Shown here: positions 16,531 through 64,000 of the stretch, in pieces
How the letters are laid out: every line of letters begins with the position of its first letter
Numbering within the stretch: the first letter of the stretch is position 1
Source of the DNA: Cyanophora paradoxa CCMP329
Lineage: Eukaryota > Plantae > Glaucophyta
Length of the DNA: 64,000 nucleotides
Reading direction: 5' to 3'
Assembly: GCA_004431415.1 (NCBI GenBank)
Contig: QPMI01000637.1
Span: 1 to 64,000, forward strand
The notes under the pieces: model-generated
What the model was told of the DNA's origin: nothing
The model's database searches: none
The model's input: the letters and a program-made list of their open reading frames with translations, nothing else
Translations under genes and position numbers: made by a program

Positions 16531-19500
16531 ATGTCTACGTACGATAACGTTAGATCTCGATCAGCGCGATCGCTTCACCGGGCTTCCCCCAAAGCCTCCG
16601 TCCTTTTCACGACTGCAGCTGCCCTCACGATCATCGCCGTTCTCTGTCTCGCATGCCATGTCTCGGCCGTGGTGGTCACGGAGGTGAAGTGGGGCGGCCT
16701 CTACGACAGCGTCAATGACGAGTTCCAGCCGGTGGCTGGCTTCGTCGCCGATGCCAACGTCGGCTCGGTCGGGCCCGGGCAGGTGCGCAGGCGCTTAAAG
16801 CATAAGATGATCGAGAAGCGGTTCAACGGCCGCGGTTTCAGCAATGAATGCGCCTACAGCCGCGCAACTCGGCGTCATCTGCCGTATTAAAGTTAATCAT
16901 GCATAGCATATGATCATGACCATATGCATTTTGCGTGCAGCACAAGCTCCCATCTTCGGGCGAGACGCTGAAAGTCCAGTTCTCCGATGGCGGCGGCACC
17001 CACATCGTCCTGTGCGCATGCGCGACTGTATATGTGCCGCAGTGCTCGCCTTCGATCGCGAGATGCCGGGCACGTGCTCGCGCGTGCATGTCTGACCTGC
17101 GCCGGCCCGTACTCATCTGCAGGAGCACGATGGCGACCACCGGGTTCACGGCGGGCACTGCCCCCGACAGCAACAACGGATGGATCAGATTTCGGTTCAC
17201 GAGTGGACCCGCAAAGAAGGGGCACGAGATGGATATGAACAATCAGAGTAAATGCAAGATGGGGCTGTCCTTCTTCGGCGAGGATTCCACGAAGTGCAGG
17301 CTGACCGATGTGCCCGATCCCGTCGCGTACATCTGCGGCGTCGTGCGTCTCACGTTTGAATATGCTTCTGCTTACGTCTACGATGCATCTGACCACGACG
17401 ACCTCCCAGGAAATCGTGGCGGGGCGGGACGACGGGAACGACAACACGGACCTCAAGATCGACGTCGTCTTCCAGAACTACCAGAACCAAGCATACAACC
17501 CGTACACGAGCGCCTCCAACGGCATCCCGAACCCGCCCTTCGTCCTTGGCACCATCGACCTGTCAGCGGCCACGAAGGCTGACCCAGTCAAGTGCGTTCG
17601 CCGATCGTGATCCGCAAGCTTGCAATTGATTCTGCCGCTCACTATCCGCGCGTTAGCTTCACGAGAACCCAGGCGGACTTCCCCGTCATCGACGACTACC
17701 TCACCTCGTCGAGCCAGGATGGCGGTCAGCAGGCATACTCGCAAACGCGCACTGGCGTGAAGGGTGGCCTCCGCGGAGCCTACTCCGGATCCGCCTTGGG
17801 GACGTGGGGGCTCTGGCTCTTCCCCTACGGTGCGCTGTCAGTGGATGCAAGATCTGTAATTATACCTCGGATGCTCCTGGGGTACCGGTGCTGATTGTGC
17901 TGCCTGGACGGTGCGCTTTCCACCAGGACCCGGCGCTGCGATGACGCAGAAGATCGCAATCGACCACGTCAAGCTCGACATCCGCTCCTGCTCGACCTGC
18001 GACTGCGTGCCGACCCCGGCGCCTTCCCCGACGCCATCCCCGTCTCCGACGCCGAGGCCGGAAGTGAAGTGGGACGGCCTGTTCGACAGCGTCAACGACG
18101 AGTTCAAGCCAACAGACTCTGTTCCACCGGCAAGCGTGACGTCCGTCGGTGTTGGCGCGGTGCGCTCAATAATATAATGTATAAGTTTCCTGTCAGATTA
18201 GGTTCAAATTCGGATTCGGTCTTGAATGCGATATCGATTTGCATGCAGCGCAAATTTCTGGCGGTGGGCGAGACTTCGAACATCGAGCTCTACGATGGTG
18301 GCGGCACCCACATTGTCATGTACGCACCTACAGCTTGCAATTGCAGGCGGCTGCAGCTGTGTGATTGTGCATTTCATGACTTTGTACACACCCGCAGGGG
18401 CTCTTCGGCGACCTCCGGCTTCACGGCGGGCACCAACCCCGAGAACAACAACGGATGGATCAGATTCCTGTTCACGAGTGGACCCGCAAAGAAGGGGCAC
18501 GAGAAGGATATGAACAATCAGAGTAAATGCAAGATGGGGCTGGCTTTCTTCGGCGAGGATACTACGAAGTGCAGGCTGATCGATGTGCCCGATCCCGTGG
18601 CGTACATCTGCGGCGTCGTGCGTCTCACGTTTGAATATGCTTCTGCTTACGTCTACGATGCATCTGACCACGACGACCTCCCAGGAAATCGTGGCGGGGC
18701 GGGACGACGGGAACGACAACACGGACCTCAAGATCGACGTCGTCTTCCAGAACTACCAGAACCAGAACTACAACCCGTACACGAGCGCCTCCAACAGCAT
18801 CCCTAGCACCCCCGTCGTTGTCGGCACCATCGACCTGTCAGCGGCGACGAAGGCCGATCCGGTCATGTGCGTTTCCTGAACGTTAACTATAACGTGCACG
18901 TGTTTATGCCATGATGGTCATACGCATGATCCGCAAGCTTGCAATTGATTCTGCCGCTCACTATCCGCGCGTTAGCTTCACGAGGACCCAGGCGGACTTC
19001 CCCGTCATCGACGACTACCTCACCTCGTCGAGCCAGGATGTCGGCCAGCAGGCATACTCGCAAACGCGCACTGGCGTGAAGGGTGGCCTCCGCGGAGCCT
19101 ACTCCGGATCAGGCTTGGGGACGTGGGGGCTCTGGCTCTTCCCGTACGGTGCGCTATCATTGCAATTGGATACAATCGCAAGATATGTAAGTATAACTCA
19201 GCTGCTCCTGGGGTACTGATTGTGCTGCCTGGACGGTGCGCTTTCGATCAGGAGTCGGTGCGGCGAAGACGGAGAAGATTGCGATCGACTACGTGGAGCT
19301 CGACATCCGCTCCTGCTCGACCTGCGACTGCATCGAGGGCCCTGCTGTATCCGAAGCTCAGATTGCCGAGCCTTCCCCTTCGCCTACACCTGATTCAGAA
19401 GCGAGCGCTCCATATACGCCGACACCACACCCTAATCCGATTGACGAATCAGAAGCGTCCTTCACGCCGCGTCCGGATCCGCCAAGCGCGACCCCTACGC

Positions 19501-22500
19501 CCAGCCCCACACCAACGCCGACCCCGACCCCATCCGTAGTGGTCACGGAGGTGAAGTGGGACGGCCTCTACGACAGCGTCGAGGACGAGTTCCAGCCGGC
19601 GGCTGGCTTCGTCGCCGATATCGATGCCAACGTCGGCTCGGTCGGACTCGGGCAGGTGCACAGGCCTAGCTTGGGGCCCGGGCTTCTAGAAGCGGTAGCA
19701 TGCGCAGCTATAAACGCGCCTAAATCTGCTGATGATCAATATTTAATTCGGCGTCATCTGTCCTCAAAGTTGATCACGACCATTAATATTTCGCGTGCAG
19801 CACAAGTTGCCGTATCAGGGCGAGACGCTGAACATCCAGTTCTACAACGGCAGCGGCACCCACATCGTCCTGTGCGCACCTTTTGCTTAACGCCGCGCTG
19901 CCGCGCATGCGCATGCTTGTATGTCATGTATACGGATATCGATGCGCGTGCTTGTTCTGACCCGACCCGTACACACCCGCAGGGGCTCTTCGGCGACCTC
20001 CGGCTTCACGGCGGGCACCAACCCCGAGAACAACAACGGATGGATCAGATTCCTGTTCACGAATGGGCCCGCAAAGAAGGGGCATCACGAAGACTTGAAC
20101 GCGCCAGGCCGATGCAAGATGGGGCTGTCCTTCTTCGGCGAGGATTCCACGAAGTGCAGGCTAACCGATGTGCCCGATCCCGTGGCGTACATCTGCGGTG
20201 TCGTGCGTCTCGTTTTCCATTAGGCTAGCGCGTTAGTGCTCATTGATCATGGCCACGACGACCTCCCAGGAAATCGTGGCGGGGCGGGAAGATGGGAACA
20301 CCAACACGGACCTCAAGATCGACGTCGTCTTCCAGAACTACCAGAACCGGAACTACAACCCGTACACGAGCGCCTCCAACAGCATCCCCAGCTCGCCCGT
20401 TCATCTTGGCACCATCGATCTCACAGTGGCGACGAAGGCTGACCCGGTCATGTGCGTTCGCCGATCGTGATCCGCAAGCTTGCAATTGATTCTGCCGCTC
20501 ACTATCCGCGCGTTAGCTTCACGAGAACCCAGGCGGACTTCCCCGTCATCGACGACTACCTGACATCGTCGAGCCAGGATGGCGGTCAGCAGGCATACTC
20601 CCAAACGCGCACCGGCGTGAAGGGCGGCCTCCGCGGAGCCTACTCCGGATCCGCCTTGGGGACGTGGGGGCTCTGGCTCTTCCCTTACGGTGCGCTTCGT
20701 TCACATGTACAGCGCTCCAGTTGCAGATCCCGTTCTTTAGAGAACCTGCTATGCATTAAATTCGGTCGTCCGGCCCTCCAATATATCTATAGCGCCGAGA
20801 GATGTATGTGCGTGAGGGTGCACTGATTGTGCTGCCTGCACGGTGCGCTTTCGATCAGGAACCGGCGCTGCGATGACGCAGCGGATCGCGATCGACCACG
20901 TCAAGCTCGACATCCGCTCCTGCTCGACCTGCGACTGCGTCGAGGCGACCCCGTCCCCGACGCCGACGCCGCCGCCTCCGCCCCCGCAAAATTGCTACCG
21001 GCCGCCCGAAAGCGCTCGGCTTACGATGAAGTACAAGGTCCTCGTCCCGAGCTTAGAAGACGCCGGATCTGATCATGACCTCCATCGATATCGCTAGCTT
21101 TGCTCGACCTGACGCGCACGCATGCGGCCCGGCCCGCGCCGCAGATTTCCTGCCCTCCGAACGTGACGATCGCGCGGGTGGAGCCCGTCGACGTGACCGT
21201 CAACGGGGACGTGAGGCGCCTCTGCGGCGCTCAGATGCCCGACCTCCGCTACCTCATCGTCGGTCCGCGCATGCGCATCTCCCGCCGGCGCTCCACCGAT
21301 GCGCTCGCGATCGAGTCGCCGACGGCCGCGCGCGGGCGGCAGGCAACTGGTCCGACGCGCGCGTGAACTTCACGCAGCAGCCGAGGCCGGGGACCTTCGT
21401 CCCCGTGCACACGGACACGGCGCCGACCAGCCGGGACTGGATCAACGCCGGCTTCGACGTCCCGGCCCCCGCCGATGGCTTCCGAGTCCGCATCGACATC
21501 GACAACCCGACTGACGCGGTGCGCGCGAAAGCTCTCGAATTCGCCCTCGCTGCCTCATGATCACGCGGCGCGCAGGGTCCGGAGGGCTCCTGCTCCTTCG
21601 GCCTGATTGTGCGGGAGCCCGGTCCGCCCCTCTGCCCGGGGACGTGCCCCAAGCCCGTCATCGCCCTCCCCGTGGATCCGGCGACCTGCTCGGCCAGGAT
21701 CCCCGACGCGAGGCAGAACCTCACGCTGCCGGCCCCGGAGTGCATCCCCCCTATGGCCGTCTCCACGGCCGACTACGTCATGGAGAGCGGCGACCCGTCC
21801 GTGCATCCGGGCGGGCAGTGGGCCCTCGCCGGCCCGCCGCCGTACGTCAAGGAGGCCCGCATCCGCCACAGCCGCTTCCCCGACGGCCCCTTCTGCCCTC
21901 TCCGCTTCGTGGTGCGACATGCGGCCGCGAAGGCTTTGATCTAGGATTTCGGGTAGGCCTAGGCCTCATGATCAGAGGTGACGTCGACGGCCGCGGGCGC
22001 AGGCGCACATTCCGCCGGAGCCGCGTGTCTCGTGGATCCCCTCGCTGCTCTTCGGGGCCGGCGCCCTCAGCGCGTCGGCGGTCGGCGCTCTAGATCTGGG
22101 ACCCAGCCCGCAGCCCGCGGACTGGGCCCGACGCTTCCAAGCCACGTGCGCCGCCGATCGCGACCGCGACCGTCCCGTGTGCGGACCGCGACAGCTGAGC
22201 GCCGCGCGCGCCGCAGGGTCGATGGCCCCTGTGCGGGCAGCTCGGTGCTGCTGCGGCACTGCAGGCCGCGCGTGCGCGTGGAGATGAACGCGAAGCTGGG
22301 CCTGGCGGGGCCCGACGTGGGCCCCTCCGGCAACTTCACCTTCGCGCCGGGCAGGCGGGCGTGGGAGTTGCAGCTCAGCCAGGCCGCCCCCGCCTCCGTC
22401 CTCGGCGACTTCAGCCGGGAGGTCCCCGACCACTACCTCGCCCTGCCCGCGTGCGCCGCCGCCCGCACGCCTGCCCTGCTTCCTTCCTTCCTTCCCCTCC

Positions 22501-29779: not shown

Positions 29780-31125
29780 TTCTTTACCTGCAACGGACGG
29801 AAGCCCGGTGGCTTGCTGCAATCGAGGCGTGTGTGACCGCGGGGAGACGTGCTGCGGTGCGCGGATCGCCTGGCGATAGCCGGTGCTCCGCGTGCTTCTG
29901 ATTCCACTTCGAAGGAACTAATGGATTGGTCGCCTACTCCTGCTATTCCGGCACTGTCTGCGAGGTGCCACTCCCGCGCGCGCTTTCTGTGTCCTGCCCG
30001 ACCGCAACGAACGCAAATGCACACAGAGGTCGCGAATCGGCGGGAGCTACAGGTCCGCTCTCTATTTCGCGCGCTGCGCCGGCAGCGCCGCGCTCTGCTC
30101 GCGTTTGACTGGGAGTCAACCCGCCGCGCAGCTGCACGGCGAGTTCGGCGACGCGCGTCGCCGCGTGGGGCGTCATCGTCGCGATCTTCGCCGTCGATTT
30201 CGTCATCTCGACGTTCCTCGCGTGGGCGCTCTGGATCAGCCTCAAGCGGCGCGGCCTCGTCGACAGCGGGGGCGCCCCCCGCGGCTCCTGGTTCGCCCCC
30301 CTCCGGCCCCCGCGGCCCGGGCGGCCCGGCGTGACCGCGCGCCGGCGCAGCTGCGGCTTCTGGCAGTCGTCGGCGTTCTGGCAGCTCTTCGCCGGCGCCT
30401 TCCTCGCCGGCTTCATCGGGGTGCGCGCGCCGCCTCGCCCGCCCCTACGCCGGGGCCCCGCCCGCCCCTCCCCTCCGACCAGGCGGGCAGGTCCTCGTCG
30501 TCTACTTCTGCCTCGCCGCCCGCAAGCCCCGCTACGTCACCCCCGCCCAGGTCCCCAGCCCCCCGCCCCCGCCTCCCCCACCGCCCCGCCTCCTCTGACC
30601 CCGGGCCCCTCGCAGCCCTCCACGCTCGTCGTCCAGTCCACCATGTACGCCCCGCAGCCGTACCCCGGTATGCAGCCCTACGGCGTGCAGCCGTACCCCG
30701 GCGTCGCCATGGGGGTGCCCGTCCCCGGCGGCGCGGCCGGCCCCGAGCCCTACTACCCCGCCCCGGCCCAGCAGTCGGCCTACGGGCCCCCGCCCTACGG
30801 GCCCCCGCCCCAGCAAGCCCCGCTCCCGTACCCGTACCCTCCCCAGGGCCCCGCCGGCCAGCCGCAGGGGTACCCGCCGAACCCGTACCCGCCCCAGGGC
30901 CCCGCCGGCCAGCCGCAGGGGTACCCCCCGAACCCGTACCCTTCCCAGGGCGCCGCCGGCCAGCCGCAAGGGTACCCCCCGAACCCGTACCCTTCGCAGC
31001 AGCAGCCCTACCCCGCATCTCCGTACGGGCCGCCTCCGGGCACAGCGGCCATGGGTACATGGCAACACCCTATGGCCGGCCCCTCGGAAGCGGGGCCCTC
31101 CGGAGCCGCCGCGCAGAAGGTTTAA
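29780..31125 (+). CDS. Small multi-pass membrane protein with a Pro/Tyr/Gln/Gly-rich cytoplasmic tail; 5' end uncertain
   Basis: Hydrophobic exons VAAWGVIVAIFAVDFVISTFLAWALWISLK and FWQLFAGAFLAGFIGVLVVYFCL. The tail has 60-nt repeats encoding PYPPQGPAGQPQGYPPN. TAA at 31123-31125. Confidence 0.6.
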
Positions 31126-31589: not shown

Positions 31590-32700
31590 GAAAGCGGGAG
31601 GAGAGACAGGTGGCGCCGGCGCCGGGCCCTGCGCATAGCCTGCACATACGCAGAGCCGAGGCGTCAGCTCGCCCCGGACAGAGGCCGGCCAGCGGTGGCG
31701 GCCGGGCCAGGTGCGCAGCAGCAGCGGCGGGGCGAACCTGGAGTCGGCGAAGCTGAAGCATCCGGCGGGCGGCGGGCGGGAAAGCGGGAGGAGAGGTAGG
31801 TGGCGCCGGGACCTGCGGATAGCCTGCGCATGCGCAGAGCCGAGGCGTCAGCTCGCCCCGGACAGCGGCCGTGCGGGGGCGGGGCCCAGCGGGAACGGCC
31901 GGGTCAGGTGCGCGGCAGCAGCGGCGGGGCGAACCTGGAGTCGGCGAAGCTGAAGCATCCGGCGGGCGGCGGGCGGGAAAGCGGGCGGAGGGGCAGGTGG
32001 CGCCGGGCCCTGCGCATAGCCTGCACATACGCAGAGCCGAGGCGTCAGCTCGCCCCGGACAGAGGCCGGCCAGCGGTGGCGGCCGGGCCAGGTGCGCAGC
32101 AGCAGCGGCGGGGCGAACCTGGAGTCGGCGAAGCTGAAGCATCCGGCGGGCGGCGGGCGGGAAAGCGGGAGGAGAGGTAGGTGGCGCCGGGACCTGCGGA
32201 TAGCCTGCGCATGCGCAGAGCCGAGGCGTCAGCTCGCCCCGGACAGCGGCCGTGCGGGGGCGGGGCCCAGCGGGAACGGCCGGGTCAGGTGCGCGGCAGC
32301 AGCGGCGGGGCGAACCTGGAGTCGACGACGCTGAAGCAGCCGGCGAGGCGGCGGGCGAGGAAGCGGGCGGAGGGGCAGGTGGCGCCGGGCCCTGCGCATA
32401 GCCTGCACATACGCAGAGCTGAGGCGTCAGCTCGCCCCGGACAGCGGCCGTGCGGGGGCGGGGCCCAGCGGGGGCGGCCGGGCCAGGTGCGCAGCAGCAG
32501 CGGCGGGGCGAACCTGGAGTCGGCGAAGCTGAAGCATCCGGCGGAGCGGCGAAGCTGAAGTAGCCAGCGGGGCCGCGGGCGAGGAAGCGGGCGGGGCGGC
32601 AGGTGGCGCCGGGCCCTGCGCATAGCCTGCGCAAGGCCGAGGCGTCAGCTCGCGCCAGACAGCGGCGGCGCGGGGGCGGGGCCCAGCGGCAGCGGCCGGG
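31590..32700. repeat. GC-rich tandem repeat, ~180-200 bp monomers organised as a 381-bp dimer
   Basis: The motif GCCGAGGCGTCAGCTCGCCCCGGACAG recurs ~6 times. Identical ORF translations are offset by 381 nt (31711/32092 and 31800/32181). Confidence 0.92.
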
Positions 32701-33919
32701 TGAGATGCATATGCGTAGCATGCGCAGCGAAGCTGATGCGGGGGGGGAAGTCGATCGAAGCGGGTGGAGCGGGAGGGCCGAGGCGTCAGCGCGCCCTGGA
32801 GAGCGGCGGTGTGGGGTCGAAGCCCAGCCCGGCGCGGCGTACTAGGAGCAGTACTAGTTGCGAATACTGTAACGCCGCCACCATCTCGGGTCGCTGGCCG
32901 CGCGCGGGTCAAGACACGCGGGTCAAGACACGCGTGCGTGCACGTGCACTGCGGCCTGCACTCGAGGCGCTTGAACGGCTTGAAGGGTTCTAGATGTGCT
33001 TGAACCGAAGCCCGTCAGAAACCGAGCTCGAGAGCGTAGGCGAAACGCCGCGAGCTCGCACCGGCCCGCGGCGTCGCGGGCGCGCGAAGTGCTTCCGGTT
33101 GCAAGGCGCGCCACCACCACGACGCGCCATGCTCGTGTACCCAGCAATCGCCACAAACTCTCAGGAGCACTTTTTTCGGGCGCCCGGTACAACAGGTACT
33201 TGAGGCGGCCTAGCGCGCCACCCTGTGCCCCTCCGGTCTCGGCATGTATAACATGAATCGTCGGGCTCATCAGGCGCATTCAGACGCACTTGGTCCGGCA
33301 GATATATCGCCACTTGGTGAGGCGCTAGATCACATTTTTGTAAAATGTGTTATTGCCCATTCCTGGCCCACCGGACGGGGCCCAGATGTCCCGGAACATG
33401 TTTCCGGGCTTCTAGGGGCATGCCTTGCGAGGATCCGGCGAGAAAACCAGGCTTTTTGGAGGTCGGGACATTTCATTTTGGCCTAGGTTGGGCACCCGAA
33501 CACCCCCAAGTGGGGGAAGGGGAAGGGGGTCCTTCCCCAATAACAACCGATCACGATCATGCATTGCAACGCGCACTTGCAAAGGCCCGCATGCGCAATT
33601 CCATGCACATATTGTAACGTTTACCGTAGTACCAGCTGCGGGCATGCAGCCCGCCGGGCGCCCGCCGCGCGGCGGCGGCGGAGGCTGAGCATCTCGTCGA
33701 GTCGGACGTAACTACTAGGCTATGCGAGCTGAGCAAGCTCCCGGGTCCAGCACCCATGATCATGATCCCAGTGCCACGCCGTTACGGTGGCTCGCGATCA
33801 AGCGCTCACTAGTAGTAGTCTGGTACTTGCCGGCGGCGGAGGCAGGGCGGTTCCAAGCGGCTTCTCCGTAGAATTCGGGAATAAAGGTCTAACATGCCAG
33901 CCAAGCAGGCGGGGCGGGG

Positions 33920-51429: not shown

Positions 51430-53433
51430 ATGGCTTTCGTTCCCGGCGGCATCCCCGCAGCCTCACGATGCGGCGCTCCGTCTGTCGGCAGCGCCGCGTG
51501 CTCGCTCGCCGGCCGGCCCGTGGCGCGCGGCGAGGATGACCGCGGCGACGGCCGCATGCGCACCCGCTTCGAGGCGGACGACATCGTCGCGTCCTCTTCG
51601 TTCGGCCTGCAAGCCGGTGAGCGCGCCCGGGACCCACCGCGGCCGGCCGTGACTGCACGTGAGACCGCCGGTCGGCGGCTGCCGCCCGCCTCCTGGCGCA
51701 GAGGGCGTGGAATTAGAGCGCAAATCTTAGCTAAAGATGACCGCGCCACCGCATACGATGCAGCCCACCTGCACGCACATGATTGACCGCTCCCCGCGGC
51801 CCGGCTTAGCTGCGCGCGCGCGCGTCCGCCCGCCAGCAGCTCATTCGACCCGAGCGCAGACGCGCCCCCTTCAGTACTGCGCGTGAACTGGGAGGACTTC
51901 TTTGACAAGCGGGTGCGGCGAGCCCGGCTCACGCGCCCGCGCCCCTCGGGCCCGCCGGCCGGCCGAGCGACGGGGCGGGGCGGGGCGGGCAGATGGGCCG
52001 CGGCGAGGTGTTCTACGGCAAGTCGAAGAAGCGCATCGCGGCGGAGCTCGCGGAGATGGGCTACGACCTCGACGCCGAGAAGGAGCCCATCCCGGACGGT
52101 GCGCCGGCCGCGCGCGGCGCGCGAACCTCGGGCGGAGCGGGCGGGCCGAGCGGGGGCGCCGCGCAGAGGAGCGGAGGCAGGGGGCAACCCTCGTGGTGGG
52201 CGCCACCGGCGGCGTCGGCCAGTGGGTCGCCCTCAAGCTCCTCAACCGCGGCGTGCCCGTCCGCGTCCTCGTCCGCAGCAAGGCCGGCGCCGAGGGGGTG
52301 CGCCGCTGCGCCGGGTCCTCGCTCGCGTACCCCCACGCCCCCCCTGTAAAAGATCTTCGGGCCGGACGGGGACAACCTCGACATCTTCCAGGGCGACCTC
52401 GCCGACCCCCGCTCCGTCCGCCGGGGTACGCGGTCGAGCCGCCGCTCCCCCCGCCCCCCGCCTCACCTTTCGCCGCAGCGGTGGCGGGCTGCGAGGCGGT
52501 CGTGATCGCATCAGGGGCTCGCTCCCCCCTCGGCGCCAACCGCCCCGAGAAGGTCCGGGGGCCCCGTACCCCCCGGATCCTGCCCCCCCTTGCCGATCGC
52601 TGCAGCCAGGTGGACTACGAGGGCGTGAAATCGATCGTGGCGGCGTGCAAGGAGGCGGGTACGGTGAAGCACGTCACCCTCGTCTCCTCCCTGGGTACAC
52701 CTCCGCGCGCGTCCGCCGGCCAGCCCCCCGCCCCGCTCAAAGCCTGTACCCTTCTTCAGGCACGACCCGCCCCGAGAAGTTCCCGCTCTACACTCTCTTC
52801 GGCGACGTGCTCCGCTGGAAGCGGAAGGTGCGGCCCTCGTCCCAGCGGGCATACGTGATTGGTTGGGTTTTGAGCCGTGTACCCCCGCAGGCCGAGGAGG
52901 AGCTCGCTGCGAGCGGCCTCCCCTACACGATCATACGGCCCGGGTTCGACCCCCCCGCCCCCCCTTCTCCTTCTCCGAAACCGATCGGGGTACAGCGGCC
53001 TGCGGGACGAGCCCGGGGGGCTACGGGAGATGGTCCTCGAGCGCGGAGACGCCCTCCCCACGTGCGCCCCCGCCCGTGCCCCCTTGCCCCCCCCCCCCCC
53101 CCCCCCCGCCCCCCTCACCGCGCCCGGTACCCCGGCCTCCAGCGGCTCGATCTCCCGCATGGACGTCGCCGAGCTCGCGGTCGAGTGCGCCGTCGCGCGG
53201 TACCCCTCCCTCGACTTCGCCGTGCGTTCGTCGCTGTACCCTCCCCTCCATTCTGGGCCTCCCTGAGGCTAACCGGGCGGCGCCGGCAGTGCCTGAACGG
53301 GCCGGGCTTCGCCGCGGGGTACGCCGAGGGGCTGGAGGAGGAGGAGGAGGGGGAGGACGGGGAGGAGGGGTACGAGCCCGGGCCGAGCCCCATGGCGGAG
53401 CCGCTGGCGCGCCTCGCGGGGGCGGCCCCCTAG
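51430..53433 (+). CDS. NAD(P)H-binding Rossmann-fold protein (atypical SDR, TIC62/Ycf39-like), probably plastid-targeted
   Basis: LVVGATGGVGQWV..VRVLVRS, FQGDL, VDYEGVKSIVAAC, VTLVSSLG, KRKAEEELAASGLPYTIIRPGGL and ISRMDVAE. Candidate transit-peptide exon MAFVPGG at 51430; its splice to the core is not resolved. Confidence 0.85.
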
Positions 53434-53798
53434 CGAGGCCCGCGGGCCCGTCCGCCGTCACCTCATCGCCGCTGCTCGCAACTTGCAACGCAGCTCTAAA
53501 ACTATAATCCGTTTTCCGTTTTTGGTTTTGCGAAACTGCACTTTTCATGATCAATTACATGCCACAATAAGGTCGATCTAAATTGCAGTCACTGAATGCC
53601 ACAATTGCATGTTCGACGGCTGATTCAAAGCAATAGCCACGAGAGAACAAATTAAACTAGAAATGAAATACCTGTGTAACTAGAAATCTAAGAGCTAGAA
53701 TAAACTATAGCTACGGCCCGCCGGGCCGGCCAGCTGCAGCGACCGTCGGACAGGCCTAGGGGCCCGGGGCTTTAAATTCGAATTTGAGGCTCCGAGGC
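52855..53798 (+). repeat. Copy A of a ~0.9 kb direct repeat (3' part of the Rossmann gene plus its 3' flank)
   Basis: Aligns by eye with 62321-63200, from GTGATTGGTTGGGTTTTGAGCC to GGCTCCGAGGC. Confidence 0.9.
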
Positions 53799-54463
53799 TC
53801 GGAGAAGTCGACGCGATGCGTATACGTATACTACTATGATACGTAGGACCCGTACGCGTAGGAACCCGCGGCCGGCCCTGAGATCTCGATCGATATCGAT
53901 CGCGATCGCGAGGCCTAGCTATACTACTACTATATGATAGCTATATATAGGCCTAGGCCCTAGGGCAGCTGCCAGGCTGCAGCCTGCAGATCTAGAGCCG
54001 GCCTGGCGCTGCGTGCGGCCCGCGGCGCCGGCTGCGCGCATACGCGTATAAGTATACGTACATAGCTATATATAGCCCCTTGGCTGCGCCGGCGACGTAT
54101 ACGCACGTAGCCCCCCCTCGAGCTCGCAAAAACAACTTGCAATTGGCAAATCGATTGGCGTAGCCCCCTCGCCCCAGCGGCCAGCGGCATAGAGCTCTCG
54201 ATGATCGTGCAGCGGCAAAGAGAATTCAAAGCTCAAACTAAGTACGTAGTAGCGCAGCAACGCGAATTCAAAGAAGGCATTCAGAACGAGCAGGCTTGCA
54301 GCTGCAGCCGCAAGCGCGAATTCCTCGCGCAAGAACGCGTCATTCTGAAACAATCCGCACACATAGGCCTGGTCCTTGCGTGCATCCGTCCGCGGCACTG
54401 GCACTTCAACACGACGCATTAGACCGATTCGGGCCGATTGCAACTCCGATCCGATTCCGTTCG

Positions 54464-57400
54464 ATGGGCTGCGCGTTCCGCAAGTCCCAGCCCCGGCAGC
54501 TGCAGCTGCAGCCTGTGCCTTGCCGCGAAATCGTCGTTGATGTCGTCGACGACAACGCTGGGCACGCCGGTGGCAGCAAGCTGAAGGCGGACTCAATCAT
54601 CGCCAAGGAATTCGATGGCCATATGCATGAGCACAGGCAGCGCACAAGTGGCGCGAGCGCAGCTGGCCGCGGGCGCACAGCTGCAGACGAGCTGGAGGCG
54701 AACGCGAGCTCGAGCGCCAGCAACCGGCGACAGCGAGCCGTCGTGATACACGGGATTCCTCTGCAGCTGGGCGACGACCCCTCAAGCGCCTCAATCCTTG
54801 CCCGCCTGCAGAGCGCCGCGCCGCCCGCTCCGTCGCTGCCAGTAGCCGCCCGGCCCGCTGCGGACGCCGCCGCGCGCGGCCGAACGCTCCGCATCTTCGT
54901 CTCTTCGACATTCCGTGCGTCGTCGTCTTCTTCCATCTTTCGCCTCGCCTCGCCCTCCCTCCCTCCCCCCCCCTCCCCCGCGCCCCCCCCCCCCCCCCCC
55001 CCCAGGCTCCCCGGCCCCGGCCCCGCGCCCTGCCCCCCCTTCTTTCAATCCTTTTCCTCCCCCTTACATTCAATCTCCGCAGAGGACATGATGATGGAGC
55101 GCGACGAAATCAGGGCGGCGGTTCACCCGCGGCTGCGGGCCCTTTGCGCGGCGCGCGGTCTCTTCCTCCACATCGGCGACCTCCGCTGGGGTATCCGCGA
55201 CGACGAGGTTGCCAGCGGCGAGGTGCACCCTGCATCCACACAGCGTACCCCCAGGAGCGGCTTGTCACTCTCTCCCTCTCAGGTTGTCCGGCTCTGTTTG
55301 AGAGAGGTGCAGCGGAGCCAGTACTTCGTCGGCCTTCTAAAGGGTCCGCCTTCTTCTAATCATTGCGTGCAAGCTCATTGCGCTTGAATTCAGGTCGCTA
55401 CGGATGGCACATCAACCCCAACGCGCCAGAGGACGACGAAAGCAATGCTCTTTTCCGCTGGCGCGCTTGTCTCTTTTCGATTTCTAAGAAATCTCTCCTT
55501 GAGCTTGCCTTACCCCTGAAACTAAACGAGCGCGAATTCGAACCCCCCTTTCCCCCCGGTCCCTCCCCGCCTCCCGGCCTCCGGGTTGTGCTCCCCCCCC
55601 CCCCCCTCAACCCTTCCCTTCCCCTGGACTCCTCCCCCTGGACTCCTCCCCCCTGCCCTTCCCCTTGCCCCCCCCCCCGCCCCCCCCCCTCCCCGGGGGG
55701 GGATGGAGATGAACGCTGCCGCAGGAACTTGCGGGTGGCCGCGGACGAGTTCCCTTGGGTGAACGAGGTGGCAAACCGCTCCGTGACTGAAATCGGTGCG
55801 CCGCTGCCAAGATCATGATGTTCTCTGCACATGTCTACATCTCTGATGGCCACGACCCGCAGAGATGCGCGCCGGGAGCCTGAGAGACTTGCAGGTAGAT
55901 TAACGAAGACTAGTGATCTAGATCTTCCGTTTTGCGCTTATTCGACTCCTCCACAGGCAGCCCGCGGCAAGGCGCTCTTCTTCTTTGCCGAGGCTGCTCA
56001 GCCAGATGAGAGGGAGGGCCTGCATGCGGTGCGGATGATGGGGGAGTTGAAGGACGAAATTCGCCGGTCGGGCCTCCCCGTGCAGCTTTACCGCGACCCG
56101 CAACAGCTCTCAGCCGTGATGTCCGAAGCGCTTGTTAAGGTGAGACTCCCGATCATGATCAGGACTGGATATCGTCCGACTCAAATCGCCCACTCCGGCT
56201 CTGTCTCCGATCCGTGCATTACGTGGAGCCGCGCTGAAATCGTCGGCAGATGGTGGAGCGCGACTTCCCAGTTGACCGAGAGCAAACGTGGCTGCAAACC
56301 CAGCGGGCTGCACAGGCCGCTTTCGCGGGTGTCCGTCAGCGAACATTTGCGGGCGATCCGGAGGACTTCGCCGCGCTCAATCAGTATGCCGAGGGAAACA
56401 GCGAGGAGATCTTCGTGCTCTTCGGAGAGGGCGGCTCGGGCAAAAGCTGTGCGAGGCATCTTTCGCCTTCTCTTGCGCGTATAGTCGATCTCAATGTGGG
56501 CGCAGCGTTGCTGGCGAACTGGACAGCACAGTGGAGCGCAATGCATCCCAGCGAACTGACGATTGTACACTTCGTCGGCGGCTCTCAGAGCAGCTCCACG
56601 TTGCCATCAATCGCGCGGTGCTTATCGCGACCGACAATCGTTTTCCTGTTCTGAAGATAGTGGGCGCAGACGTCTTGGAGAGGAGGTAAAAGAGCGCTGG
56701 CCCGAAGTAGAGGAGTTGGAATGGCGCGGCGATGACGTTACATTGGCTGGGCAAGTGCGGGCGTGGCTTACGGCGGGGGCGCAACGGTGGCCGGCGCGGG
56801 TGTTGCTGGCGCTGGATGGGCTCGACCAACTTCAGGGACCAACGGTGGTCCAATCTCTGGCGTGGCTTCCAGACGCTGCCGGCTCGCGCCTGCGCATTGT
56901 AGCTTCTTGCATCCCTGGTTCGCGTGAGACAGTTTTCTTCATTCGCTGTAATCAATCAATGAGATGCATCGCAGGCCGTGCACTCGATACGGTAAAGCAG
57001 CTTCCCCGTTTGACGACTCGTGAGCTGCTTCCGCTCGATGTGAAGAGACGAGAACACCTGGTGCAGCGCTTGCTGCACGAGCAAGGCAGATCCTTGAGCG
57101 ACGATCGCGTCAACCGGATCGTCCAGTCGGCTGCTTGTGGAAACCCGTGCGCTTCTCGTTCACAGCACTCATTGCGTATATGTAGAGCCATGCATATGGG
57201 AGCTTTCGACCGCAGACTCTACCTCCGCACGTTGCTCGAGGAGCTTTCTGCGGTAGCTGTGCACGCGACGCTCGACGCGGTTCTCGACGAGTGCCTCGTG
57301 TGCAGCGGCCCGCGGGACCTTTTCCGAGCAGTCCTCCGACGTCTCGTCGCCCGGCATAAGCTAAAGGGGGGCGCGGGGGGTGAGAGCCCTGTAGCGGAAG

Positions 57401-60400
57401 TCGCACGGGCCATTCTGTGTTCGCGACACGGTATGGCGGAGAGCGAGCTCGTGGAATTGTTGAGAGTCGGGAACAGCAGCGGAGTGACCGAGGTTCGAGC
57501 ACCTTCATCACATTCGTTCAATCACTTTTCACCTTTTCCAGTCTTATGTTTTATTTCCAGGTTGCATGGCAATTGCTCTGGTATGATCTATTGACGCTAC
57601 TAATTGATCGGGGTGATCGATTGATTTGACGCTACTTTCTGCGAATCTCGCGCTCTTCGTATGTAATTATAATCATATGCATCTGGCAGATGGCGTGTTT
57701 GGGTTTTTTCATCGCTGCGCCGCCGAGGTAAGCAGCCAGCTACATGCTTTTGTGGGATCTTCTGGGAGTTGTGCGTGCTGCTGATACGATCTTCGAATTC
57801 TGATTGCAGGCTGCGCAACTCGAGTTTGGGCTGTCGCGAGAAGACAGTAGTGGTGCACTGGAAGATCTTCGAGAAAATGGAGAGATCACTTTCCATCTTC
57901 TCGGAAACTTTTTCGCCAAGCAGGAGCCGTCAAAGCGACGAGCAGAAGAGGGCTCGTGGGCGCTTGCACACGCCGGTCCTGCAGCGAGCGATCAGCTGGC
58001 GAACTTTTTGACCTGCTCGGATGTTCTGCGCTATCTCGATTCCTCTGAGGTATGTGAACTCTGGCTTCAGAGCGGGCGCTCGGACGAGGCGTCAATTCGA
58101 TACGAGAATGGTCTTGAACTCTACGGCGCCTCTGGGCCGCTCGAGTCAGCGGGACCTGATGGCAAATTTGGAGATCCGAAGGCAGTGTACCTTTCTCGAG
58201 CCGGTTGGGTCTTGCACACGATCGGTCGATCCAAAGACGGCCTGCCATTCCTCACGGTAAGTCAGAATCATATATATGTGCATGTAATCGCGCATTACGG
58301 ATGCCGTGTCTTTAGCTTCTCTGCGATTGCAAATTCATACCATTCTGTGCAGCGCGCCATCGACATTTGCGAGAAAACGCTTGGTCCGGAGCATCCAGTC
58401 ACAGGCGCCATCATAAATCAGCTCGCTTCACTTCATAAGGCAATGGCTAACTACGAAGCAGCTCTGCCTCTGTTTGAGGTCTGTCTCTCTTTCTCTCTCT
58501 CGCCGCACGCTGACGCGATCGCGCGAATTTGGAATGCAACGGCTGATTATAAAGTGACCGCCACAGCGGAGCCTCGCAATCAGCGAGAGGGCGCTTGGCT
58601 CTGAGCATAAGTTCACTGCGAAAATGCTGCACGAACTGGCCTCACTGCATCTGGCTCGACTCGATCACAACGCCGCGTTGCTGATGTACGAGGTGCGCCA
58701 GAGAAAGCGTGGCCATGGGCAACCTCTCCGTTTCTCCAGTTTTAATTAGGACTCTCGCAGCGGGCTCTCGCCATCAGGGAAAAAGCTTTAGGCCCAGACG
58801 ACCCAGGGACAGCAGCGACACTGCACGATATGGCAATATTACACCAGATGCGAGGCAACTACACGACTGCCATGCAACTTTGCGAGGTGCATGCGCATGT
58901 GCCCATGGTATAGAAAACAAGGGATCGAAGTCTGGAAAACGTTAATTTGGCGCAGCGAGATCTAGCGATTAAGGAGAAGGCACTCGGCCCGGAGCATCCT
59001 CACACAGCGTCGACTTTGCACAACCTCGCAGCTCTACATGTAACACGAGGCCAATACGCTGCGGCGCTGCCGCTGTTTGAGGTTCGATTCTAGCTATAGG
59101 GCGCAGCATCCTAGCTATAGGCCTCGCGAAATCGATCGCGATTGCGATCGGGGCAGATAAAAGCGGTCTAACTCAGCCGCTCGCAGCGGGCTCTCGCCAT
59201 AAGAGAGAAGTCAGAAGGCCCAGAGCACCCGAACACGGCCGCAACGGCAAGCGATCTGGGGCAACTACACCGGTACATGGGAAACCACGCGAAGGCGTTC
59301 GAATTGTACGAGGTGCGCATGCCTCAAATCTTGTGTTTTGTGTTTTTGCCTCCGAACCGCTCACATGGAATGATCTCATGCCGCAATACGCGTACGCAGC
59401 GGGCTCTCGCAATCAGAGAAAAAGTGCTCGGCTCGGACCATCCACAGACCGCTTCGACAGCGAGCGATCTGGGGCGACTTTATCAAGATCAGTGCAATTA
59501 TGCTGCAGCGTTGCCTATATTCAAGGTGCAAATCGCTCGACGGTTTTTTTTATCATGATCAAAACTCGCAAGGCTGACGTACAGCCGTCGATGAGAAGCG
59601 AGCACTCGCGATCAGAGAGAAGGTTTTCGGCTTGGAGAATGCTTTTACAGCGGCGGCGCTGCATGATTTGGCGATGTTGCACCGGGCTCAGCGCGAAAAT
59701 AAGACTGCTATTGAACTATATGAGGTGTGTACGAGTCCAACTACGCATACCAACTACGAGTCCAATTACTTATAATATAAATGGAACCGCAGAGAGCACT
59801 CGCAATTTTCGAGAGAACTCTCGGACCGGACCACGCTCGCACAGCTGGAACGCTCCACGAATTAGCACAGCTCCATCTTAGCTGCGGCAACTTCAAACAT
59901 GCGCTTCCGCTTTACGAGGTGCGATTTCGATAACGCGTTCGTGTGCCATGTACATGCACATGTATGTGTTCGGGTCCGGCAGCGGGCGCTGGCTATCAAA
60001 GAGAAGGCCCTCGGAGCAGAACACGTCAACGTAGCGGCAACTCTGAACGATCTGGCTCATGTTCGTTTGGAGCTTGGAGACCGCGATGCGGCTCTGTCTC
60101 TGTTTGAGGTGCGCAAAAAGAAGTAGGACGTTGAAAAAGAAGCAGACTGTAGTTGGAGACTGCACGCGGGCGCAGCGGGCGCTTGCAATCAAGGAGAAGA
60201 GTCTCGGGCCGGAGCACGCAGACACAGCGGCGACACTGCTTGGGCTGGCCCGCCTTCATCATGCACAAGGCAACACCGCGGCCGAGCTACCTCTGTACGA
60301 AGTGCGCGACCATTGACTTCAGGATGAGGGTCGGCTGACCACGAGTCGATTTATCCATTCTTTGCAGCGCGCGTTAGTAATCTTTGAGAAGGCGCTCGGC

Positions 60401-62104
60401 CCGAAGCATTCCAGCACGGCTACGACGTTGCACAGACTCGGACGACTTCATTTAGATCTGGGAAATCATTCTGCCGCTCGCCCGCTGCTCGAGGTTTGTC
60501 GAAGCTTTTAACAGCAGCTCCAATCGATATCCTGCAGGCGGCCTCCGTCCCGCCTCACGCGGCGGCAGAGGGCTCTAATGGCGCGGGAGGAGTTGTTGGG
60601 TCACTCGCATCCTGACACTGCGGAGACCCACGACGCCCTCGGCCGTCTCGAGTCCGCATGCGGGCGGCGCGAGGCAGCCCGTCCTCACCTACAGGTGCGC
60701 CTCCCGCCCCGCTAGCGCGCTGCGGCAGCTTGCGATCGCGCGCTTGATGTTCCTCGCGCGCAGCGGGCCTTCTCGGTGAAAGAGAAGGCGCTCGGACCGG
60801 ATCATCCGAGCACGGTGTCGACGATGAGCGAGTTGGCGCAATTGCACCAGGCGGAGGGGAACTTCGCTGCGGCCGTGCCTCTATGCGAGGTGAGCACGCG
60901 CATAATTTTTTCGCAAAAGTGGACGTCTCATTAAGAACACCACGGCACATGTCCTAATGAGCACGCGCAAAAGAGCACTGCTCGCCACGCGTACGGATCG
61001 GGAGAAAGCGATCGAGAAAGCGCGAGCACGAGAGCCAGCTGAACTGCTCGCAGCGCGCCCTCGCCACCATCGAGAAAGCAATGGGAAAGGACCATCCGAG
61101 CGCGAGGGCGACGCTGCACCAGCTGGCGTCGCTTCACTTGGCGCAGGGCAACTACGACGCGGCGCTGCCGTTGTATCAGGTCCCTGCACTCGACTTGAAG
61201 CCCTCGTTGCGACGGCTGACGGCTGACGCCGACGTGGCCCTGCAGCGGGCCCTCGCGATCTGCGAGAAGGGGTTCGGTCCAGAGCACGCCAACACGGGAG
61301 TGATGCTGCACGAGCTCGCATCTCTGCACCTAGAGCGGCGCGATTACAGCGCAGCACTGCCGCTTTACGAGGTGGGGGCAGCGAAGAACAGTTTTCCGGA
61401 TTTACTCGGTCACACGCCGGCGTTTTAATTTCGCGCGCGAGCGCAGCGGGCCCTCTCGATTCTCGAGAAGTCCTTGGGTCCGGACCACCTCCACACGGCA
61501 GCGGCGATGCGCTGGTTCGGCCGTCTGCACATGGAGCGCGGCGACCTTCCGGCCGCCCGGTCCATGCTCGAAGCGAGCTCTCTCTCTCTCTCTCTTTTTC
61601 TTAGGATGCGTTCTCTTTTTCTTAGGATGCCCGCAGCGATCGCTCGCCATCCGGCGGGCGGGGCTGGGCGAGGGTCACACCGCCACAGCCGCCAGCGCGA
61701 CGGCGCTCGCTGAGCTTCGCATGGCGGAGGGGGAGCACGGAGCGGCCCGCTCCCTCCTCGAGGTGCGCGCGTGCTGGCCTCCTCGTCCCGGCCGCGGGCC
61801 GCCCGATCGCGAGCTGCCGGCAGGGCGCGCTTGCAGCGCGGGAGGCGGCTGTCGGCCCCGCGCACCTCGACACCGCCGAGACGCTGCACGCCTTTGGGCG
61901 CCTCGAGGCTGCGTGCGGGCGTCCCGACGCGGCTCGCGCCCGCCTCGAGGTTTGTACCGCGCCTCGAGCTTGCGCTCGCCACCCCCCACGCGTACGATCA
62001 CCGGCCCGCAGGCGGCGCTGGCTGTGCGACGGGAGCGGCTCGGCGAGATGCACCCCCTCGCTCAGGAGACGGCTGCCGAACTTACCGCACTTCGAACTTA
62101 CTAA
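54464..62104 (+). CDS. NLR-like STAND protein: DUF4062 (TIR-like) - NACHT/AAA ATPase - ~19 TPR repeats (nephrocystin-3/TEP1-like architecture)
   Basis: MGC start. LRIFVSSTF..ERD..DLRWG..LCLREVQRSQYFVGLL.GRYGW (DUF4062). Walker A GEGGSGKS, HFVG, Walker B LLALDGLDQL, WLP and GNPLYL. 42-aa repeats RALAIxEKxLGPxHPxTAxxLxxLAxL. Confidence 0.9.
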
Positions 62105-62320
62105 CTATAAGTTGAACGTACAGTGGTATTAGCCGTAAAAAACTTTCCAACGAGTTCAGTGTACTTGTGTGAAGTGCTCTTGATCATGAGCTTGTTCATG
62201 TAATTGAGATACTAACGACCTTTGTCAACATGAATCATACGTATATACGTATGATTCGCATTGAGTCGCATTGTCGTTCTTCTGTAAATCCGGACAGATA
62301 TAGGCCCACGACACTGGGCA

Positions 62321-63200
62321 GTGATTGGTTGGGTTTTGAGCCGTGTACCCCCGCAGGCCGAGGAGGAGCTCGCTGCGAGCGGCCTCCCCTACACGATCAT
62401 ACGGCCCGGGTTCGACCCCCCCGCCCCCCCTTCTCCTTCTCCCGACCGATCGGGGCACAGCGCTAGCGGCCTGCGGGGCGAGCCCGGGGGGCTACGGGAG
62501 ATGGTCCTCGAGCGCGGAGACGCCCTCCCCACGTGCGCCCCCGCCCGTACCCCCTTACCACTCCTTCCCTCAACATGTTCGGTACCCCCCAGCGACTCGA
62601 TCTCCCGCATGGACGTCGCCGAGCTCGCGGTCGAGTGCGCCGTCGCGCGGTACCCCTCCCTCGACTTCGCCGTGCGCTCGTCGCTGTACCTCCCCTCCAT
62701 TCTGGGCCTCCCTGAGGCTAACCGGGCGGCGCCGGCAGTGCCTGAACGGGCCGGGCCTCGCCGCGGGGTACGCGGAGGGGCTGGAGGAGGAGGAGGGGGA
62801 GGACGGGGAGGAGGGGTACGAGCCCGGGCCGAGCCCCGTGGCGGAGCCGCTGGCGCGCCTCGCGGGGGCGGCCCCCTAGCGAGGCTCGGAGCCCGTCCGC
62901 CGTCACCTCATCGCCGCTGCTTGCAACTTGCAACGCAGCTCTTAAACTATAATCCGTTTTTGGTTTTGCGAAACTGCACTTTTCATGATCAATTACATGC
63001 CACAATAAGGTCGATCTAAATTGCAGTCACTGAATGCCACAATTGCATGTTCGACGGCAGATTCAAAGCAATAGCCACGAGAACAATTAAACTAGAAATG
63101 CCTGTGTAACTAGAAATGTATACGTAAGAACTATAGGTAGAATAAACTACGGCCCGGCCAGCGACAGGGGGCTTCGAATTTGAGCTCGAGGCTCCGAGGC
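62321..63200 (+). pseudogene. 5'-truncated duplicate of the last exons and 3' flank of the Rossmann-fold gene (copy B)
   Basis: Near-identical to 52855-53798, including introns. It starts inside an intron and lacks the GATGGVG N-terminus. It has small indels, such as a shorter Glu run. Confidence 0.85.
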
Positions 63201-64000
63201 GCGGACCCGCGCGAACTAGACGCGCGCGAAAACGGGTTCACAGGAATTCGAAGCTAGAAAGAAATCGCGAATTCGGTGATGCGGCCCGGCGGGTCTGAGC
63301 AGAAAATCGAAACAGGGTTCCGGGTCTGAGCATGCGCATGCATATGCGGCAAACATTTCCTAGAGCCGGCAATACTCCGGATGCAAGAAATACTACAAAT
63401 AGCACTTGAGCTAGACCCTCGGGCCTCGGATCAAAGCTAAGGGCTGAAAAATTGGAAGTCCAAGACTCCAGCCACTGGCACCGAACTTGGGTTGGGAAAG
63501 ATTTTTCTACCGAAGCTCGAATCATGATCTACTTGAGAAGTCATGATCATGATCAGGACCGGACCGGAGATGCACGTGCACGTATGCCGCGACGCGACGG
63601 AAGTATCCAAAGCTTAAGCGGGGTAGAAAATTTAGAACTGGTAAGCTAGCGGGAGGATCGATATTTCGAGAGCGGTATGAGCAGAAATGTACAAATTTGG
63701 AATGGCAGCGAAAAACCAAGCCAATTGAAATATTGCAAGTCTTGTGTATAGCTACTAGTACCAATGCGTATACTGCCGAAGCAAAAAAGGAAGAGGAGGG
63801 GCACATGGCCCGCCCGGACCCGTGGCCGGGCCGGGAAGGGCGCGCGGGCCGACTATGGTACAGTGTTCAGGACGAACTGAACAAGGTGCAGCTCGAGCTG
63901 GGGAGCGGGCTACCAGCCGGTGCCGGAGAGGCGCCCCTCGGGGAAGACGACGAGGGCGTCGGGCTCGGGCTCCTCCCCCCGCCGCCCCGGCCCCGCCGCC

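Follow-up and report, generated by a model that had tools for sequence, protein, structure and literature searches.

Eighteen 126-nt tetratricopeptide repeat exons, old and spliced in order, in an NLR-like gene of the glaucophyte Cyanophora paradoxa

The gene described here, tig00021489_g21662, lies near the right end of a 64,000-nt stretch of the Cyanophora paradoxa CCMP329 genome (assembly GCA_004431415.1, contig QPMI01000637.1, positions 1 to 64,000; hereafter the window) and ends in a long array of tetratricopeptide repeat (TPR) exons of identical length. The dominant transcript carries every array exon in order, the synonymous sites of these exons are near saturation and the repeats are consequently old. 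The predicted protein has an NLR-like architecture, supported by profile matches and motifs, with an effector head, a central NACHT domain with Walker A and B motifs, and 18 TPR units plus a cap. The gene gives no evidence for a combinatorial or adaptive system. It is the long, old member of its family, and its stability makes it a useful comparison for the young paralogues, for instance tig00000241_g20969, which are likelier to show diversification.

An earlier reading of the sequence alone (hereafter the sequence-only reading) had described 18 exons of exactly 126 nt with phase-0 boundaries, followed by a terminal exon, and this description was confirmed at every coordinate (Table 1). All 18 exons are exactly 126 nt long, are in phase 0 at start and end and have a stop-free translation, and the last exon, of 93 nt, carries the stop codon. 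Upstream of the array, no two of the 15 exons are equally long (32-451 nt) and their phases are mixed. Only the array is regular, therefore, and to a degree that goes far beyond what chance would produce. Introns of the array are 61-164 nt long. All their acceptors are AG (AAG before exon 7), and 17 of the 18 donors following the 126-nt exons are GT, the remaining one, after exon 16 (61573), being GC. The profile of the array units matches kinesin light chain TPR structures (E 1e-49), by which the units are classed as kinesin-light-chain-type TPRs. Pfam TPR_10 positions 1-26 align with exon residues 17-42, which places the introns within helix B and not between structural TPRs; judged by this alignment, each array exon joins the final part of one TPR to the first part of its successor.

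A search with the NACHT stretch returned a 99% identical protein (P0001, EukProt Cyanophora paradoxa tig00021489_g21662). The public model of this gene retains intron 4 and stops at 698 amino acids; the 34-exon model used here encodes 1,636 amino acids with no internal stop. Introns from 56351 onward were tested against RNA contigs, and the eight 5' exons were placed by splice signals and homology only.

Thirteen public runs contain the stretch, and the splicing evidence comes from contigs of three RNA-type runs from two studies, plus the DNA run X8. The RNA joints listed, all but 10 of the total, connect neighbouring exons at GT..AG. The intron before array exon 1 and array introns 1-14 were seen directly in this way, and no exon-skipping joint was found among those listed for the RNA contigs of the three runs; X8 gave zero joints. 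A 4,306-nt contig of run X1 and a 2,738-nt contig of run X2 both have exactly 2,016 nt (16 x 126) from array exon 2 to the last exon, and the dominant transcript accordingly holds the whole array in order. Loose RNA ends at 59239 and 62039 in the three RNA runs were considered as signs of recombination and discounted, as they have the appearance of short matches to a different TPR transcript, one of them out of register. Exon number did not differ among the runs examined, which include no second strain. Eleven other runs with the same species label (X14-X24) hold 0-4% of the words of the gene, a level at which low depth, low expression and a gene-less strain are indistinguishable.

The age of the repeats is evident from their divergence. 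Array exons share on average 54% identity at the DNA level (maximum 67%) and 46% at the protein level (maximum 64%), and their fourfold sites are 32% identical, compared to 27% expected by composition. The longest exact stretch common to array exons is 14 nt, and array introns are no more alike than shuffled introns, the top pair being alike in CT repeats; on these two results, recent exon duplication or conversion was rejected. Spare, dead or inverted TPR exons were not found in a six-frame profile search of the window, which detected only the 19 coding exons. For 13 of the 18 units the nearest neighbour is in the same gene, where chance would give about 1.8, and identity between an array unit and a unit from elsewhere is 67% at most, which indicates that the array grew through duplication within the gene. 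The same cross-gene maximum led us to reject exchange with other genes.

The ends of the array behave differently from its middle. Over its final 72 amino acids the protein shares 57% identity with the C-terminus of paralogue P0004. In the unit tree, units 16-18 cluster with late units of P0003 and P0004 with modest support. In the 42-column trees, which are poorly resolved, units from the middle of the arrays cluster with those of their own gene and vary in number, and terminal units keep their place. Array exon 12 is closest to exon 18 (65% nucleotide and 60% amino acid identity) and, by this similarity, is a copy of the unit-18 type and the trace of an old block duplication. Since the terminal units are special and unit 12 is of the unit-18 type, the units are not all interchangeable, though all are in frame. 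The GC content at third codon positions (GC3) is 0.58 in array exons 1-11 and jumps to 0.80 in exons 12-19. CpG is not depleted, and the GC content of the gene as a whole lies below that of its neighbours (70-79%).

The residue pairs that the sequence-only reading listed as varying from exon to exon do so as described, at unit positions 22-23. As a special variable face they did not hold up, since the entropy at these positions is 2.46 bits vs 2.32 bits at other surface sites, and a hypervariable pair was accordingly rejected. Among 51 close unit pairs of the paralogues (pairs that are not independent of each other), positions 22 and 23 changed 4 times each, and sites 26, 29, 30, 19 and 16 changed 26-44 times. 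In young paralogue arrays, sites 22-23 are thus among the least changeable, and change is most frequent at sites 16, 19, 26, 29 and 30. The latter belong to helix A, the helix that lines the TPR groove. Helix-A sites are 1.1 times as variable as other surface sites in this gene and up to 2 times in some paralogues, which hints at diversification in the family and indicates nothing of the kind for this gene. The ratio of nonsynonymous to synonymous substitution rates (dN/dS) is uninformative on the array, because its synonymous sites are near saturation. In fungal TPRs, the sites that are under selection lie on the concave face (PMC4986451).

The order of the protein is a Met-Gly-Cys start, a low-complexity linker, DUF4062, NACHT with both Walker motifs, a helical domain and the TPR array. 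The proposed DUF4062-NACHT head was borne out, both Pfam domains scoring above cut-off (PF13271, 47.4 bits vs 24.7; PF05729, 36.8 bits vs 26.7); NB-ARC is absent from the Pfam matches of the gene, in which NACHT appears instead. In the helical region the matches to NPHP3_hel and HTH_NWD1 are weak and below cut-off, and the closest paralogue exceeds the NPHP3_hel cut-off. The fold of the head was predicted with a confidence (predicted local distance difference test, pLDDT) of 81 from the public model P0001, which includes an 88-amino-acid read-through of intron 4. Its best structural matches by VIA-align are TIR and nucleoside deoxyribosyltransferase (NDT) domains (Z 9-11), and Foldseek gave no match for the head at E 0.001. 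The head profile matches the TEP1 domain structure 11GZ at E 7e-44, and catalytic residues were numbered by alignment to 11GZ and by the published TEP1 residues R908, R954, R976 and E1008 (TEP1 preprint). The equivalent of R976 is kept as Arg219, and the column of Glu264, the residue matching E1008, is conserved in at least 90% of 100 homologues. Based on the TIR/NDT fold and the retained glutamate, the head is a predicted NAD(P)ase. According to two preprints of 2026, the DUF4062 (NIR) domain cleaves NAD+ in bacterial anti-phage proteins and in TEP1, and most eukaryotic NIR proteins are NLR-like (10.64898/2026.05.01.722283, 10.64898/2026.09.04.749371).

The N-terminus possibly carries a lipid anchor, although residue 6 after the Met-Gly-Cys start is Arg and departs from the ideal acylation motif. 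Met-Gly starts are present in 10 of the 28 paralogue models and Met-Gly-Cys starts in 7 of the 28. An immune role may be inferred from the domain types. PADLOC assigned only a generic TPR model to the gene, and Rfam had no match in 52000-64000.

The gene belongs to a family of paralogues, as the sequence-only reading requires, and not to a set of single-copy orthologues of NPHP3. At least 33 other C. paradoxa gene models have the same head (24 so named and nine by naming scheme), and they are located mostly on separate contigs. In a FastTree phylogeny of 106 heads, 30 Cyanophora rows and one unlabelled row fall on one side of a branch with support 100; this tree is subject to composition bias and includes neither true NPHP3, none of which was returned by the homology searches, nor other glaucophytes. 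The NPHP3-specific domain PF25022 gave no match to P0001 at E 0.001, and one paralogue reached 20 bits against a cut-off of 33. A single-copy NPHP3 orthologue is thus ruled out by at least 34 gene models, by the tested heads forming one Cyanophora clade and by the lack of a PF25022 match. Repeat number differs between paralogues: the nearest ones, with heads 52-59% identical, have about 5, 7 and 10 detected units vs 18 here, and other paralogues have 0-13 units detected in imperfect gene models. Young arrays were found in P0009 (tig00000241_g20969; mean identity 75%, maximum 93%), P0154 (mean 78%) and P0157 (mean 72%), which are the best candidates for repeat-number polymorphism. Two adjacent paralogues, P0008 and P0151 (tig00021037_g17428 and g17429), are nearly identical and represent a very recent tandem duplication.

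Outside Cyanophora, the same domain order occurs in amoebozoan, echinoderm, bacterial and archaeal proteins. Five intron-rich amoebozoan homologues have TPR introns scattered in position and phase and no 126-nt exon. A 42-amino-acid difference between Rhizamoeba isoforms was considered as a skipped repeat and rejected, since the difference is N-terminal. The 126-nt layout is lineage-specific and probably convergent with that of brown algae, because it is absent from the five amoebozoan homologues and because brown algae use NB-ARC. Occurrence of the same design next to different ATPases suggests that expansion of TPR sensors in genomes rich in introns has more than once produced a repeat-per-exon layout.

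The explanation that we consider the most probable, with some reservation, is that the gene encodes a constitutively spliced, probably lipid-anchored NIR(DUF4062)-NACHT-TPR switch with ligand-sensing TPRs, an NAD(P)+-cutting NIR domain that acts when clustered, and slow gain and loss of repeats. The exon layout, in-order splicing of the array, domain order, catalytic glutamate, family size and repeat age are its observed basis, and the steps of the switch are modelled on the biology of STAND proteins. N-terminal acylation would hold the protein at a membrane, where the TPR solenoid would keep NACHT off. Ligand binding in the TPR groove would lead to nucleotide exchange and oligomerisation, and the clustered NIR domains would then cut NAD(P)+ and bring about a stress or defence signal or cell death. 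The equal phase-0 exons would be the fossil of one intron-containing repeat that was copied by unequal crossing-over within the gene, and their symmetry would permit the sensor to become longer or shorter in the course of evolution, giving paralogues of different length. Several points weigh against this explanation. The RNA evidence consists of assembled contigs of depth 8-13, which lose rare isoforms, from cultures grown under unspecified conditions, and the DNA is of one strain only. The equivalent of TEP1 R908, which supports activity, is Gln151 here, at an exon junction placed by splice signals and homology. Furthermore, human NWD1, NWD2 and NPHP3, which have the same head, are inactive as NADases in vitro (10.64898/2026.05.01.722283, 10.64898/2026.09.04.749371).

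The sequence-only reading had favoured a receptor that actively works in a combinatorial way, one locus yielding many sensors through exon skipping or continuing exon shuffling. Each array exon is indeed skippable in frame, paralogues vary in repeat number, the repeats of P0009, P0154 and P0157 are young and near-identical, and repeat exons of brown-algal ROCO genes are alternatively spliced (PMC11378527). On the other hand, RNA contigs show a single isoform with zero skipping joints, there are no spare or dead exons such as those of Ectocarpus, the array lacks near-identical DNA to drive recombination, its introns are too short to serve as an exon reservoir and the terminal units are fixed in place. 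We therefore regard such a system acting on this gene as quite unlikely. It seems rather likely, instead, that diversity sits between paralogues and that the array exons of this gene are neither recombined nor spliced combinatorially. A non-immune function has somewhat more in its favour and is still on the unlikely side. The protein would then be a membrane or flagellar scaffold resembling NPHP3, its lipid anchor targeting the flagellar or plasma membrane, its TPRs binding proteins or other partners of the cell itself as in kinesin light chain and its NIR domain being regulatory or weakly active. NPHP3 is myristoylated and ciliary, and Cyanophora is a flagellate. The domain order as in NPHP3, the Met-Gly(-Cys) starts of many paralogues, expression in ordinary RNA runs and an old, stable array all fit this alternative. 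A clade of so many gene models with variable repeat number is, however, not what would be expected of a conserved ciliary gene; the head is recognised by DUF4062 and not by PF25022, the catalytic glutamate is retained, and the closest relatives outside Cyanophora are NIR-NACHT-TPR proteins of amoebozoans, bacteria and archaea. Finally, the gene could be a decaying or relaxed duplicate, a protein with little function whose exon regularity is a neutral by-product. Its GC3, which in units 1-11 is below that of the neighbours, and its position between two copies of a duplicated segment could be taken that way. This is nevertheless very improbable, as 1,636 codons are free of stops with all motifs intact, framework residues are kept while synonymous sites are near saturation, and a spliced transcript was found in two studies.

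A broader scenario extends the favoured switch to the whole family. More than 30 genes would form a membrane-anchored, NAD-cleaving NLR repertoire with repeat-per-exon TPRs independent of those of brown algae, diversified by exon gain and loss, by condition-specific skipping that contigs fail to show and by whole-gene presence or absence between direct repeats. Taken as a whole this is unlikely; if true, innate immunity would already function in a lineage at the base of the plant supergroup.

Table 1. Features of the NLR-like gene and its flanks (positions in the window).
Feature	Position	Strand	Basis
Left flanking direct repeat: 3' end of an NmrA-like NAD(P)-binding gene, with its last exons, stop and 3' region	52855..53690	+	Sequence comparison
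Whole gene, 34 exons, 1,636-aa open frame (tig00021489_g21662)	54464..62104	+	Translated model, homology, RNA contigs
Met-Gly-Cys start, possible N-myristoylation and palmitoylation signal	54464..54487	+	Sequence; acylation inferred
DUF4062/NIR domain, about aa 140-345, exons 1-8, TIR/NDT-like fold	54881..56280	+	Pfam, predicted fold, profile
Glu264 codon, interrupted by intron 5; Glu264 corresponds to catalytic TEP1 E1008	55795..55864	+	Alignment to 11GZ
NACHT Walker A, aa 394-401	56424..56447	+	Sequence; Pfam NACHT
NACHT Walker B, aa 484-491, next residue Gln instead of Glu	56803..56826	+	Sequence
Helical/winged-helix region, exons 12-15, runs into first TPR	57216..58256	+	Weak profile matches
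TPR array: 18 phase-0 126-nt exons, one 42-aa TPR period each	58353..61949	+	RNA contigs, sequence, profile match
Array exon 12, internal copy of terminal-type unit	60569..60694	+	Unit comparison
GC-AG intron after array exon 16, with 21-nt tandem duplication	61573..61636	+	Sequence, RNA contigs
Terminal exon: capping unit and stop	62012..62104	+	Sequence, similarity to paralogue P0004 C-terminus
Right flanking direct repeat: fragment, begins inside an intron	62321..63120	+	Sequence comparison

Some smaller features of the gene were also recorded. The tandem duplication in the GC-AG intron occupies 61608-61628, and a DNA contig is gapped by 21 nt there, which reflects either a collapse or an allele. 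The intron after array exon 13 contains a 54-nt piece (60906-60959) that has further matches, in the DNA run to several other contigs of higher depth and in the RNA runs to a different transcript. With a 10-nt inverted repeat within and a 15-nt direct repeat flanking it, the piece looks like a small multi-copy element, which would explain the 164-nt length of this intron. RNA extends past the stop to about 62219-62331, and a hairpin with perfectly spaced 20-nt arms, 85% complementary, is found in the 3' region of the gene at 62225-62264.

The gene is flanked by two copies of a 0.8-kb segment in direct orientation, which differ by 24 substitutions in 793 aligned nt (3.0%) and by 12 gaps; weaker similarity continues to about 53800 and 63200. 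Either an 8.6-kb block was inserted with a long duplication, or a fragment was pasted downstream. Under both origins the flanking duplication is far younger than the array. The direct repeats, a possible insertion scar or excision substrate, could allow deletion of the gene. Elsewhere in the window, three tandem copies of a 1.3-1.6-kb low-GC unit (16667-20986), 71-97% alike in parts, lie within what is apparently one secreted protein gene with a Pro/Thr-rich linker. A 51-nt tandem repeat in three copies (30825-30999) and a tandem array of about seven copies of a 184-198-nt unit (31618-32850) are also present.

Both the architecture and the exon design have been published before, each separately, and the literature searched contained no example of the two together in a glaucophyte. 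The parallel with brown algae drawn in the sequence-only reading is supported by the NB-ARC-TPR genes of Ectocarpus (Zambounis et al., PMC3341825), which share with the Cyanophora gene the 126-nt, 42-amino-acid, phase-0 TPR exons after a STAND ATPase, membership of a multi-gene family and local exon duplications. The differences are the NACHT domain and DUF4062/NIR head in place of NB-ARC, introns without the inactivated TPR exons that those of Ectocarpus carry, synonymous sites near saturation in contrast to dS below 2, and the host lineage, Ectocarpus being a stramenopile. With the NIR/DUF4062 NLR-like proteins (human TEP1, NWD1/2, TTC41 and NPHP3; bacterial Avs2-NIR, Swarozyc and Vulcan) the protein shares an N-terminal DUF4062, the catalytic glutamate, a NACHT/STAND module and a repeat sensor. 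Unlike them, it has a sensor of 42-amino-acid TPRs and not WD40, Gln at the TEP1 R908 position, a lineage-specific expansion and an activity that is predicted only. The DUF4062-NACHT-TPR proteins of amoebozoans (Dictyostelium DDB_G0287407-like; Acanthamoeba, Balamuthia, Pelomyxa) and prokaryotes have the same domain order, heads 30-35% identical and 42-amino-acid TPRs; one of them also has a Met-Gly-Cys start. Fungal NLRs with TPR arrays of high internal conservation (Dyrka et al., PMC4986451) likewise have kinesin-light-chain-type TPRs after the NOD and a variable number of repeats, but in their arrays, which vary from strain to strain, internal identity is above 85% (PMC4986451), whereas in the Cyanophora array no two units are more than 64% identical at the amino acid level.

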